Origin: Dimorphilus gyrociliatus
Lineage: Eukaryota > Animalia > Annelida
Length of the DNA stretch: 64,000 nucleotides
NCBI GenBank assembly: GCA_904063045.1
Contig: CAJFCJ010000005.1
Location: 883,988 to 947,987 of the forward strand
Direction: 5' to 3'
Every line of letters begins with the position of its first letter. The stretch's first letter is position 1. The notes below the pieces were generated by a model. The model was not told where the DNA came from and searched no databases. It saw nothing but the letters and a program-made list of their open reading frames with translations. Positions 30,038 through 38,216 of this stretch are shown here, in pieces. Position numbers and translations under genes: made by a program.

Positions 30038-30073
<36 letters not shown>
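30038..30073. repeat. (GA)n microsatellite
   Basis: Directly visible. Confidence 0.95.
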
Positions 30074-30076
<3 letters not shown>

Positions 30077-30164
30077 GGGAGGATAAATACATATGATTTT
30101 TCTATAAAGTTAGCTATAGTATACTTTTAAAAAAAAACTGCACGTTAAGCGTTTCGTAAGTCCT

Positions 30165-30216
30165 CACTAGCGCCGCCTGATATACATATATTCCCGTCGC
30201 ATTATCTACTTCAGTT
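30165..30216 (+). promoter_or_regulatory. Probable core promoter of the AstC-like gene: CTCF-like CACTAGCGCCGCCTGA (30165-30180), TATA-like tract (about 30181-30190) and Inr-like TCAGTT (30211-30216)
   Basis: TCAGTT matches the insect-type initiator consensus TCAGTY and lies 36 nt before the ATG at 30252. The spacing is promoter-like; the TSS is inferred. Confidence 0.5.
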
Positions 30217-30251
30217 CAACACCCCAGCTGGTCCGTAAATTGTGCGGAAAA

Positions 30252-31261
30252 ATGAAAAACATTGCAATTGTAGCACTCTGTTTGGTTTTCGTTTTAAATA
30301 ACTTTACCTATGGTGCAGTTTTGAACAGAGAAGATTTGAATGAAATGGAACGAGATTTTCAAGTAAGAAATTATAAAATTCATCTGGAATTGTGAAAAAT
30401 AAATGAAGCAACCGTAAAAGTTTTGTTTCATCTTTTTTTCGCAATTAAACTAATAGTTAAATCTAATTTAAATCCTACTTTAATAGTTTTATCAAGGATT
30501 TTAGATATTCTTTTAACATTAGGCTTATAGTAACTTATGATAGGGATTGATAATTTCCGTCTAAGCAGTACAATTCTTTTTCACTATTCCCAATCTTAAA
30601 ATATAAAGGAGACGTCTCTGCGAAGAATGGAGACGGTGAGCCAGGGCTTAAAACATCCTATTTAAGCTTAAAAACTGGCACATTTACAAACCGTTCCAAG
30701 CAAAGTATTAATAAGAGATTAAGTTTGACAAGCGCCAAATACATACTTTTCTTACTCAACAAAGAAATAAAAAGTATGAAATTCTCTAAAGAGTCCGTTT
30801 CTGAAACCGGAAGTTGTGTTATAAACAATTGAGCGGGTTTGCATAATAAATAGAATGAATTGACAAAATTTGTCATCAACTTTTATGCATCAATTTGTAA
30901 CTAGAATGTCTTTTTTTTATCTATTTGTTATGTTATGCAAATACCATTTACACTCTTTTATTTATCAATAAACAAGTATAAAAAAAACAACTATCTGATC
31001 AGCCAATGAAAAGGGAAATAAACAATAAGTAGATACTTTATACAATTATATAACATTTAAAAATAGTAGAAACTTAATAACTGTTCTAATAACGTTTTGT
31101 TTTTCTTCCATATTCTTTATGGAAATCTTTAGAGTGAAGATTTTCGGCGACTTTTCAAATTTCTTCTGAGGAATAAATCGAGAGAGAATAAAGAAATGAT
31201 TGATTTAAAGAAGAAAAATAATGCTAAACAGTGTTTCTTTCACGCCATCAATTGCTGGTAG
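30252..31261 (+). CDS. AstC: Allatostatin-C / somatostatin-type neuropeptide precursor, 88 aa (79 aa if the 27-nt micro-exon is skipped)
   Basis: Exons 30252-30362 (MKNIAIVALCLVFVLNNFTYGAVLNREDLNEMERDFQ|GTAAGA), 30609-30635 (ETSLRRMET|GTGAGC) and 31133-31261 (SEDFRRLFKFLLRNKSRENKEMIDLKKKNNAKQCFFHAINCW*), all with phase-0 junctions. It has a signal peptide, an acidic pro-region, a KKK basic site and a C-terminal C-x6-C-aromatic peptide. AATAAA lies at 31297-31302. Confidence 0.8.
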
Positions 31262-31416
31262 ATGGTATAACTGTTTTGAGCTAGCTTAATGTTTTAAATA
31301 AAGGCAGATGATGATTGTTCAATGACTTCAAATAATGATTTCCTTCGTTTATGAAGAAAATTTTGCAATCAGAAATGTTGTATACATATTAGTATACAGA
31401 AAAAAATCTGTATATA

Positions 31417-31419
<3 letters not shown>

Positions 31420-31470
<51 letters not shown>
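31420..31470. repeat. (TA)n microsatellite preceded by ATATACTGTA
   Basis: Directly visible. Confidence 0.95.
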
Positions 31471-33678: not shown

Positions 33679-35631
33679 ATGATTTCTTCTTACGCCAAGA
33701 TTATAACAATCATCCTTCTTATAGTAGAAACTGAAAGTTTATTCTTCGGAGGAGATACTAAAACCACAAAAAGACCGTATTATCAGCCACTTCTGTCCAG
33801 AGAATGTCCCTTATGGAGAAACACTTGTAACGCTTACAGAAATAGATGCAAATGTCCAAGAGCCGGCTGTGAGAAGTTCCCAATTGAAATCATAAAAAAC
33901 AAGGGAAATATTACTAATATTGATCTTACACTGAATAGGATATCAATGATACCAAGTTTGGCTGCTTTTCCAAAGTTGCAAATCTTACGGTTGAACGATA
34001 ATGTAATATCGAAAATTGTATCTGGAGCTTTCAATGAAAATAAAAACCTGCGCGAACTCTATTTGAAAAATAACAAATTGGAAGAATTAAATCGTAAAAA
34101 TTTTGCTTTCTTTTACAATTAAACATGAATTTTAATAATCAAATTGATTATTCATTTTTTAGCCAAACTATTTAGATATATTAGCGATCTAAAAATCCTC
34201 AATCTTGAAGGCAACAAATTGAAAAGTTTGAAGAAAGAAAACTTTCATTTTGCATATATATCAAGATTAGAAGAACTATATCTTGCAGATAATGATATTA
34301 CTGATATAGGAGAGGATGCGTTCACCGATCTTCCTCATCTAAGGTAGGAAAGAAAATTGATATTTGCCATATTAATTACCCTGCTAACAACTACAGAGAA
34401 CTAGATTTATCCGGAAATGCATTGCAAACAATAAATAAAGATTATTTTATTGGTTTGTCAAACTTGAAATATCTATATCTAAGAAATTGCAGTATACAAC
34501 ATTTAAATAACAAACCATTCGAAAGTAAAAAATTCAACTTGATTCATCTATTTCTTAAGTTAAAAGGATAATAAAAAACTTTCAGATTTGTATAATTTGA
34601 AAAAACTGGTGTTAAGCGAGAATAACGTACAACGAATTAGGCCAAACAGCTTTCATGGCTTAGATGATCTACAAATTCTTGTATTCAATAAAAATCCAAT
34701 TCAGATACTTCAGGAAGGTGTCTTTGGTCGATTAAGATCTCTTCTTACACTTTTCCTAGAAGATCTTGATATCCAGGAAATTTCGGAAAGATTCCTAAAA
34801 GGACCAACTGAAAAGGTTTTATTTTTATGATTTCTTTGTTTTATATCTCCATTTCATATACTTTTTCCCGTATAGTCGTTACAGGCGCTATCCCTCAATT
34901 ACAATCAAGATTTAAAGATCATCAAGAATTTTACTCTATCTCATTTGGATAATGTTGAAATTACAATTTCTCGAACTTTCTTCCTCTCTAAAATTGAAAG
35001 TGGCGCATTTGGTCTAAAGCAAGATTTCAGTCAAAGTAATATAACAAAATTGAGCCTAAATGATAACTCTCTATCAATTATTTCGGTTTGAACAATTTAT
35101 TTAATCATTATCTTTTGTTGAAGAGAAATTTTTATCTTCCTATCTTTCACTTAGGAAAATCTAGTGGATTGGCAAACCTTACGTCGTTTAGATTTAAGTA
35201 ATAATCCATGGAATTGCGATTGCAGGTTGAAATTTTTAAGGGATGTCGTAATGGAACGATCTGAAATACATTCTGTAATGTAAGTTTTTAAGCCTATGTC
35301 TGTTTAAAAGATGCTTTTGAAATAAACGAATTTCATGTGAGTTTTTTTGTAAACAAGATGCGATATTCCACTTCAATCAAGAGGATTGTCTATGGACGAA
35401 ATGGATTCAAGCGAATTTACCTGCTCTCATCATACAATGAGGAAGAGAATGAAAGGAATTCTAATTATTAGCGTTACAGTCGGATTCATATTCTTTTCGA
35501 TATGCCTATTCTGGAGGAAGAGAGAAACGCTTCTTGGATGTTGTTTCGGGAGGAAGAAGCAAGGTTATACTAGAGTAACATTAAATGGAATATCTAAGAA
35601 AGAGGAGCTAGTCGAACCGGTAAACGTTTAA
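33679..35631 (+). CDS. Type I transmembrane leucine-rich-repeat protein (about 14 LRRs, LRRCT, TM, short tail; Tartan/Capricious-like architecture), 520 aa
   Basis: Exons 33679-34093, 34163-34343, 34397-34524, 34586-34815, 34876-35085, 35155-35279, 35358-35631 total 1563 nt in frame. It has a signal peptide, a Cys cap, LxxLxLxxNxL repeats, NNPWNCDC...C...C, and TM GILIISVTVGFIFFSICLFW. No TIR, Ig or FN3 domain is present. Confidence 0.9.
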
Positions 35632-37181: not shown

Positions 37182-38216
37182 CTATACAGGGCTGTCATCT
37201 AATTGAAATAGTAATTTCTTTAAAGATTTAGCTTCAATCTCGAATTGATCCAGTTTTTGTAAGATATTTGTCAAAGATTTATTAGTCTTTGAATTTTTAT
37301 GGAATAGTAAATTCTTGAAGAACATGTCGTTGAAACGTTTCATATTAGTTTTTGCATTACTTCCAATACATCTGCTCCCAAGGCAATTAATATTATAGTC
37401 ACATTCTCCATCGTCGTTACAAGCCGGTTCATCAACCGTAAAATCATCTAAATCTGTTAATTTGATATGACTATCCTTAAGCAAAAAATGAGAATCTTTA
37501 AAATCGCTTATCCTAAGAGATCCCATAGCTGAGTTTTGTAAATAATCAAGAAAATCCGCAAGACTATATGCGGTTGTTAACCTTAATTTCCATGGCCAAT
37601 TTCGGATTGTTGATATATAGAAGCGAAGGGCATACTCGTAAACAGCAACCACTCCATGTTCGCTAAGTGACGTTGCTTCGGTTTCTTCACCTTTAACGCA
37701 GTATCCCACAAGTTTTAATAAATTCTTATGCGATAGTTGCTGGAGTAGTAATATTTCTTTCATTAATTTCATATTAGGAAAGGAGAAGCATCTATGTCTT
37801 TCCGAATGGCTTGCTGCGCCATTAGGTGAATTGAGAGCCGCCTTCTTGACACAAGTTTTAACATCTTTAACATTTCTTGTAACCATTTTAACGGCAATTT
37901 TCTCTTCAAGATACGAACCTAGGAAGACTTGTTTCGTTACGCCATGACCAATTTTCCTCTCAATTCTAATTTTTGGAATATTGGAGCAATTAAATTTATA
38001 TCGACTAATCGTTGGAAATGATTCTATATCATTAGCATGCTTTAATATAGATTGTTTTTTCTCAATTTTTGGCGTATAGTCTTCAACACTATCGTAAAGT
38101 CCATCTACTTTCGAGCAATCGTCGTTATATGACGCAAAATTGATGACTATGTGCCCCAAAAGAAGAGTAAAAAGGATTAAAAAAGACGCCATTTTCCAAT
38201 TATATTGTGATTTCAT
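37182..38216 (-). CDS. PKDCC: Extracellular (secretory-pathway) tyrosine kinase PKDCC/VLK homologue, 344 aa, intronless CDS
   Basis: N-terminal hydrophobic signal/anchor; IGHGVTKQV Gly-loop; IAVK; KLMKEILLLQQLSHKNLLKLVGYC; SAMGSLRISDFKDSHF; IKLTDLDD; Cys-rich EPAC...C...C...C. These correspond to the diagnostic PKDCC motifs (KEMVLL..L.HPNVL.LYGYC, SPLGS..LLDFRPRQF, LKVTDLDD). Confidence 0.92.
   Translation of the reverse strand: MKSQYNWKMASFLILFTLLLGHIVINFASYNDDCSKVDGLYDSVEDYTPKIEKKQSILKHANDIESFPTISRYKFNCSNIPKIRIERKIGHGVTKQVFLGSYLEEKIAVKMVTRNVKDVKTCVKKAALNSPNGAASHSERHRCFSFPNMKLMKEILLLQQLSHKNLLKLVGYCVKGEETEATSLSEHGVVAVYEYALRFYISTIRNWPWKLRLTTAYSLADFLDYLQNSAMGSLRISDFKDSHFLLKDSHIKLTDLDDFTVDEPACNDDGECDYNINCLGSRCIGSNAKTNMKRFNDMFFKNLLFHKNSKTNKSLTNILQKLDQFEIEAKSLKKLLFQLDDSPV

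Follow-up and report, generated by a model that had tools for sequence, protein, structure and literature searches.

A candidate two-exon gene of allatostatin-C type in the annelid Dimorphilus gyrociliatus, with one paralogue in the same genome

A small candidate neuropeptide gene lies in a stretch of 64,000 nucleotides from the annelid Dimorphilus gyrociliatus (contig CAJFCJ010000005.1, positions 883,988 to 947,987; the window, below, is this whole stretch), which is AT-rich eukaryotic DNA of about 30% GC. Positions are those of the window, and features are on the + strand unless marked otherwise. Exon 1 (30252-30362) has 37 codons for a predicted signal peptide and the start of a pro-region; its translation is MKNIAIVALCLVFVLNNFTYGAVLNREDLNEMERDFQ, and it is followed directly by GTAAGA, giving the phase-0 donor CAA|GTAAGA. 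The signal peptide was called heuristically, from KD hydrophobicity and the -3/-1 rule: the hydrophobic core reaches a maximum of 3.56 (KD) over 10 residues, and the rule holds at TYG|A, which places the predicted cut after G21 and splits the exon as MKNIAIVALCLVFVLNNFTYG|AVLNREDLNEMERDFQ. In the two-exon model a phase-0 intron of 770 bases (30363-31132, GTAAGA...TCTTTAG) follows, and then the last exon (31133-31261), with 42 codons and a TAG stop. The acceptor of this exon, tctttag, coincides exactly with the start of its open frame. An in-frame TAG (31130-31132) stands immediately 5' of the exon, so the frame cannot be entered by reading through, and from the splice signals we infer that exon 1 is the exon joined to it. 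The last exon translates as SEDFRRLFKFLLRNKSRENKEMIDLKKKNNAKQCFFHAINCW followed by TAG, and contains, in this order, an amphipathic pro-region (SEDFRRLFKFLLRNKSRENKEMIDL), three lysines (KKK, 31208-31216) that form a predicted prohormone-convertase cleavage site, a peptide, and the stop.

The flanks carry signals that would suit a small gene. The 120 bases 5' of the ATG have 45% GC, against 29.5% for the window, and this GC-enriched stretch (30132-30251), which includes a TATA-like element (ATATACATATATT, 30180-30192), may represent a promoter-like region with a short 5' leader. The start codon stands in the context gaaaaATGa, with A at -3. A polyadenylation-type AATAAA (31297-31302) is found 36 bases 3' of the stop, although in a genome of 30% GC such a hexamer is weak evidence. 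The locus is single-copy DNA, which rules out an origin from a repeat or transposon. Two microsatellites bracket the small gene, (GA)n at 30040-30075, some 180 bases upstream of the start codon, and (TA)n at 31420-31470, some 160 bases downstream of the stop.

An earlier note on this DNA had described a gene of three exons, with 37, 9 and 42 codons. All three stretches do translate as it stated; the 9-codon exon is the part that lacks support. The 770-base intron contains 24 AG..GT intervals that are in frame and free of stops, and this candidate micro-exon (30609-30635, ETSLRRMET, between ...ataaag and GTGAGC) is one of them. Its donor, ACG|GTGAGC, is the best among the 24 candidates and agrees with 5 of 7 consensus positions, while its acceptor, ataaAG (AAG), is weak and has a poor pyrimidine tract. 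No exon matching it is present in the paralogue described below. The micro-exon is no more than chance would supply, and may be alternative or spurious. As both introns of the three-exon model are in phase 0, the frame is also kept when exon 1 is joined straight to the last exon, and the precursor then has 79 residues, or 88 if the micro-exon is included. Given the weak acceptor, the 24 candidates of which this is one, and the single phase-0 intron of the paralogue and of spiralian allatostatin-C (ASTC) genes (PMC9048919), the two-exon, 79-residue model is at least as likely as the three-exon model.

The predicted mature peptide, NNAKQCFFHAINCW (31217-31258), is the 14-residue segment between KKK and the stop. 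It ends in C-x6-C-W, with the loop F-F-H-A-I-N between the cysteines (C-FFHAIN-C): the first loop residue is aromatic (Phe), the third is His, and the sixth is Asn. A disulfide between Cys6 and Cys13 is predicted to close a ring of six residues, and the predicted monoisotopic mass of the oxidised form is 1692.729 ([M+2H]2+ 847.372). There is no Gly before the stop and hence no amidation signal, and the C-terminus is predicted to be free. The signal peptide, the pro-region, the KKK and the terminal C-x6-C-W 14-mer without amidation Gly had all been listed in the earlier note and are present in the translated sequence, as are the points that it had found unusual, namely His in place of Asn, Asn before the second Cys, the terminal Trp, and KKK. 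As a cleavage site KKK is atypical and less common. Its use for processing is supported by KKR at the aligned position of the paralogue and by other precursors of the same species, as KKK and KK sites flank the repeated peptides in the published D. gyrociliatus precursors of pedal peptide 1, DLamide and achatin (PMC7854359).

The paralogue (L002) is found on contig C6 (1593561-1593695, minus strand) and ends KKR-GKPCYWSLVSCW, with the ring CYWSLVSCW. A six-frame search of the genome (77.9 Mb in 349 contigs) with the last exon of the studied gene gave one non-self match, the last exon of L002, at E 0.079, and the reverse search returned only the studied locus, at E 0.057. These searches were run exon by exon, without a joined spliced protein. 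When the two last exons are compared pairwise, E is 6e-08. Exon 1 of the one gene has no significant similarity to exon 1 of the other, and none would be expected of signal peptides. In L002 the first exon encodes a predicted signal peptide (MTAVFVILLACLFVGSS...NDIQ|GTAAGT), the intron is in phase 0, about 595 bases long, with the acceptor tttttcag, and the last exon reads KSVKPEQFAKFYNLLLKTLNENRNVEDMIDKKRGKPCYWSLVSCW-stop. The two genes thus have the same two-exon build, and exon 1 ends alike in both, DIQ|GTAAGT in L002 and DFQ|GTAAGA in the studied gene (D-[FI]-Q|GTAAG). The residues common to the two last exons are F..LL...EN..MID.KK..K.C......CW-stop, which places F..LL, EN, MID-KK, K-x-C and CW-stop in both, and the first loop residue is aromatic in both. 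Overall identity is only about 30%, and L002, which lies on another contig, differs in its canonical KKR site, its peptide of 12 residues (predicted monoisotopic mass 1425.621) and Ser as the third loop residue. By sequence comparison L002 is the closest relative of the studied gene and the sole paralogue found in the genome. Just upstream of L002 is a TATA box, TATAAAAA. A perfect cAMP-response-type palindrome, TGACGTCA (L002:2380-2410, minus strand), is found about 15 bases upstream of that box, at a distance of about 55 bases from the start codon; no element of this type is evident before the studied gene in the window.

According to Koch et al. 2022 (PMC9048919), protostome ASTC precursors always have a six-residue loop (see also PMC8786951) and a single C-terminal peptide copy, usually have an Asn in the loop, and carry an intron of phase 0 within the pro-region. 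In the studied gene the two cysteines are exactly six residues apart, there is one copy of the peptide, it stands at the C-terminus of the precursor, and an aromatic residue follows the second Cys. A heuristically called signal peptide opens the precursor, a basic site (KKK) stands directly upstream of the peptide, and the pro-region intron is in phase 0, with its donor after codon 37 and its acceptor before the first codon of the last exon. The usual Asn at loop position 3, common to most ASTCs although not to all, is replaced by His.

Two ASTC genes are already known from D. gyrociliatus, AstC1 and AstC2. Back-translated patterns of their peptides gave exactly one match each in the genome, and the open frames there reproduce the ends of the published precursors, ...RKRNPIQCLVNIVSCWKK and ...RKRDPYPCLVNIVACWQRRK. 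Their acceptors also lie at codon boundaries. AstC1 (C6:1,923,074) is on the same contig as L002 (C6:1,593,561), about 330 kb away, while the studied gene is on C5 and AstC2 on C24. AstC1 and AstC2 follow the same plan as the studied gene: a signal-peptide exon, a phase-0 intron, and then a last exon in which a helical pro-region and a basic site precede one terminal C-x6-C-W. They differ in their loop, L-V-N-I-V-[SA], in having RKR as the basic site, and in a basic extension beyond CW (CWKK, CWQRRK), whereas the studied gene has F-F-H-A-I-N, KKK, and a stop right after CW. The earlier note had given CLVNIVSCW as the annelid form, correctly, as AstC1 and AstC2 read CLVNIV[SA]CW. When an alignment of the studied gene and L002 was compared with one of AstC1 and AstC2 by hhalign, the probability was 66% and E was 5e-05, over 18 columns only; these are the last 18 columns, to which the similarity is confined. 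A search of the genome with the profile of the studied gene and L002 did not retrieve AstC1 or AstC2. None of the four ASTC-type exons, those of the genuine AstC1 and AstC2 among them, has a match in Pfam. In a protein language-model atlas the last exon of the studied gene has look-alikes among peptide-hormone precursors, which is a lead only: the top one, at 0.90, is an unnamed arthropod cluster, and somatostatin scores 0.77. The atlas gave nothing for the paralogue.

In molluscs and annelids the loop of ASTC opens with an aliphatic residue, in arthropods and nematodes with an aromatic one (PMC9048919). By this measure, and judged from their sequences, the studied gene and L002 form an aromatic-loop subgroup that ends CW-stop, distinct from the aliphatic-loop AstC1 and AstC2. 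In its aromatic first residue the studied peptide is arthropod-like. AstCCC (Apime-ASTC) is SYWKQCAFNAVSCF-amide and AstCC is GQAKGRVYWRCYFNAVTCF (PMC4704819, PMC6008092). The alignment with AstCCC proposed in the earlier note holds up, since K, Q, C, F, A, C and the aromatic end are shared with SYWKQCAFNAVSCF, in the pattern K-Q-C-x-F-x-A-x-x-C-aromatic. With AstCC the studied peptide shares an aromatic first loop residue and a non-amidated end, and the arthropod C-type allatostatins, too, are paralogous genes with one peptide each. The studied peptide differs from them in having His for the conserved Asn and an end in Trp instead of Phe, and from AstCCC, which is amidated, in having no amidation Gly. 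One-to-one orthology with any of the arthropod genes is not to be expected, as Veenstra reportedly concluded in 2016 that the triplication of ASTC in arthropods is specific to that group.

The best available reading, from gene architecture and a motif-level match, places the studied gene in the ASTC family. On these grounds we consider it probable, at roughly 60%, that the locus is a real, unannotated, two-exon neuropeptide precursor gene of ASTC type. If so, the 79-residue prepropeptide (88 residues with the micro-exon) would enter the secretory pathway by means of the signal peptide of exon 1, which would be cut off after Gly21, and a prohormone convertase would cut at KKK. This would release the C-terminal 14-mer NNAKQCFFHAINCW with a free, non-amidated C-terminus, whose two cysteines would close the six-residue disulfide ring. 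The ring peptide would then act on a GPCR of the ASTC/somatostatin type, and its effect would most likely be inhibitory. Splicing, processing, disulfide, receptor and neuronal expression are all things that we infer for this gene.

Among the other explanations, the strongest accepts a real gene for a secreted cyclic peptide and denies that it is functionally an ASTC. The gene and its CYWSLVSCW paralogue would be specific to the lineage and have another receptor or role, and the C-x6-C-W would be convergent or eroded. We regard this as unlikely. Several of the results above fit it: unlike the known annelid ASTCs, the studied peptide has a loop that opens with an aromatic residue and is without the common Asn, the two-gene profile misses AstC1 and AstC2 in the genome, Pfam is blank, and no homologue was found outside this genome among 1.84 billion representative proteins. 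Against it stand the loop size, the single C-terminal copy, the aromatic end, the phase-0 intron, the helix of the pro-region and the basic site, each of which agrees with ASTC. Koch et al. state that no motif is strictly conserved among ASTC peptides (PMC9048919), and the blank in Pfam extends to the exons of the genuine AstC1 and AstC2.

The published neuropeptide list of D. gyrociliatus has AstC1 and AstC2 as its only ASTCs (Martin-Duran et al. 2020, PMC7854359), and NNAKQCFFHAINCW is absent from that list. In the literature searched, which excluded the supplements of Koch et al. 2022 with their possible ASTC listing, the ring sequences of both genes had no match. AstC1 and AstC2 themselves are said to come originally from work by Kerbl and colleagues in 2017. 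Word searches of 5.8 billion proteins, transcript-derived ones included, with the two open frames of exon 1 (51 and 74 residues) found no match, and the same was true of the 62-residue frame of the paralogue in a search of 5.8 billion proteins. A profile of the two last exons, which scores 95-103 bits on its own loci in the genome, had zero matches among the 1.84 billion representatives, not even to itself. As a control, a neighbouring 344-residue open reading frame of the window is present in the protein collection by way of NCBI, UniRef and Logan. The collection thus covers the proteome of D. gyrociliatus, and the blank means that the studied gene and its paralogue are both unannotated in public protein sets; on distant relatives a blank profile search says little, as the query is very short. 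The earlier note was therefore right to call the gene hidden, in that neither the published list nor the public proteins searched contain it. Its suggestion of a less studied second paralogue alongside the CLVNIVSCW type holds as far as sequence can show, with a gene that is missing from the list and has a sister gene of the same build.

Absence from the records would also suit a silent or decaying duplicate, that is, a former ASTC-type gene that is expressed negligibly or not at all. The published list is based on transcriptomes, the public protein sets that lack the gene include ones derived from read assemblies, and both the atypical KKK and the His in place of Asn could be seen as signs of decay. 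This we think distinctly doubtful. The two exons and the two splice sites are intact, as are the start context and the stop, and a copy free of constraint should have gained stops by the time its identity to the paralogue had fallen to about 30%. The paralogue and the somatostatin-related (SSRP-like) genes of this species are likewise missing from the published list, so absence from it is weak evidence, and in arthropods AstCC is scarce as well (PMC4704819).

A further possibility is that short open frames in AT-rich intergenic DNA have come to lie next to each other by chance, and that there is no gene at all. The C-terminal motif on its own cannot answer this. The pattern [KR][KR]-x1-8-C-x6-C-[WFY]-stop, preceded by 20 open codons, is present once in the real window and in 1% of simulated 64-kb windows, or about a dozen times (12 expected) per genome, and is not significant alone; some 1300 windows of the D. 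gyrociliatus genome had been read. All the frames are short, and no transcript-derived protein matched those of exon 1. The case changes when the first exon is considered together with the last. An ATG exon that looks like a signal peptide and ends in a phase-0 consensus donor is found in 1.7% of simulated 3-kb stretches, and in 0.3% at the donor quality observed here. On the strand of the motif, the 3 kb upstream of it hold a single such exon, namely exon 1, 770 bases away. Over both strands of the real window (128 kb) only two loci qualify, exon 1 and the N-terminus of an annotated protein, which leaves exon 1 as the only qualifying signal-peptide exon on the + strand. The joint occurrence of the motif with such an exon is expected about 0.2 times or fewer per genome, a figure that, like the others in this test, is indicative only, as the criteria were chosen after the candidate had been seen. 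The co-occurrence of exon 1 and the last exon is far above chance. With an acceptor exactly at the start of the open frame, and a reciprocal paralogue that has the same architecture and shares motifs of the pro-region, a chance arrangement appears improbable.

The earlier note had also called the gene somatostatin-type, and this is the part of its family assignment that fails. In the SSRP-like peptides of protostomes the loop has four residues and always contains WK, and a Pro-rich tail follows whose last residue is Trp (Koch et al. 2022, PMC9048919); the group includes Aplysia urotensin II and the consomatins, an example being Capitella pQASSGAQICIWKVCPPTPW (PMC9048919). Like them, the studied gene would encode a small precursor that ends in one disulfide-ring peptide, and it has a phase-0 intron in the pro-region. 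Koch et al. report three SSRP-like genes in D. gyrociliatus, two of them without the second intron (PMC9048919), and a gene with two exons and one phase-0 intron would fit that description. The idea that the studied gene is one of these three is nonetheless effectively refuted by its six-residue loop without WK or tail, and by SSRP-like loci with CMWKVCPP and CIWKACPP found elsewhere in the genome. In one of these places (L006:1500-1566, + strand; C2:4411576) an open frame ends ...CMWKVCPPSAWKASGERRLKA, and in another (L007:1300-1533, + strand; C10:1079118) an open frame ends ...LCIWKACPPER; both are exons for SSRP-like (urotensin/somatostatin-related) peptides, and they are consistent with the genes reported by Koch et al. 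2022. A third match to the SSRP-like pattern (L005) is in a zinc-finger protein (CFWKGCP) and not in a peptide gene.

If the studied gene and its paralogue are expressed as ASTC-type precursors, this model miniature annelid would have twice as many ASTC-type ligands, four instead of two, and it would follow that neuropeptide catalogues built on transcriptomes and BLAST, as well as gene annotation, miss small precursors of two exons. The loop Phe-Phe-His, compared with the usual x-[FV]-Asn, would offer a natural variant for structure-activity work on receptors of the ASTC/somatostatin type. For the debated history of ASTC and somatostatin the gene would have a bearing only if orthologues turn up in other annelids. 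A wider conjecture, which we hold to be a long shot, is that annelids carry a second, old ASTC-type lineage that similarity searches overlook. Its genes would have a loop that opens with an aromatic residue and lacks Asn at position 3, and a peptide at the very end of the precursor. In that case a duplication in early protostomes would have given rise both to the aromatic-loop type of arthropods and nematodes and to the aliphatic-loop type found in molluscs and annelids, the two types might have separate receptors, and the pair described here would not be a recent private duplication of Dimorphilus.

Two neighbouring features of the window deserve mention. The 344-residue open reading frame used as a control (37182-38216, minus strand) is a single exon whose product has a hydrophobic segment at the N-terminus and a core like that of protein kinases (GHGVTKQVFLG...IAVKM). 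NCBI and UniRef list it unnamed, and it may be a kinase-like protein that is secreted or anchored in the membrane. On the + strand, an open reading frame of 147 residues (33679-34122) combines a start resembling a signal peptide with a Cys-rich cap and leucine-rich repeats (NKISKI.., LRELYLKNNKLEEL), and is probably the first exon of a leucine-rich repeat protein.
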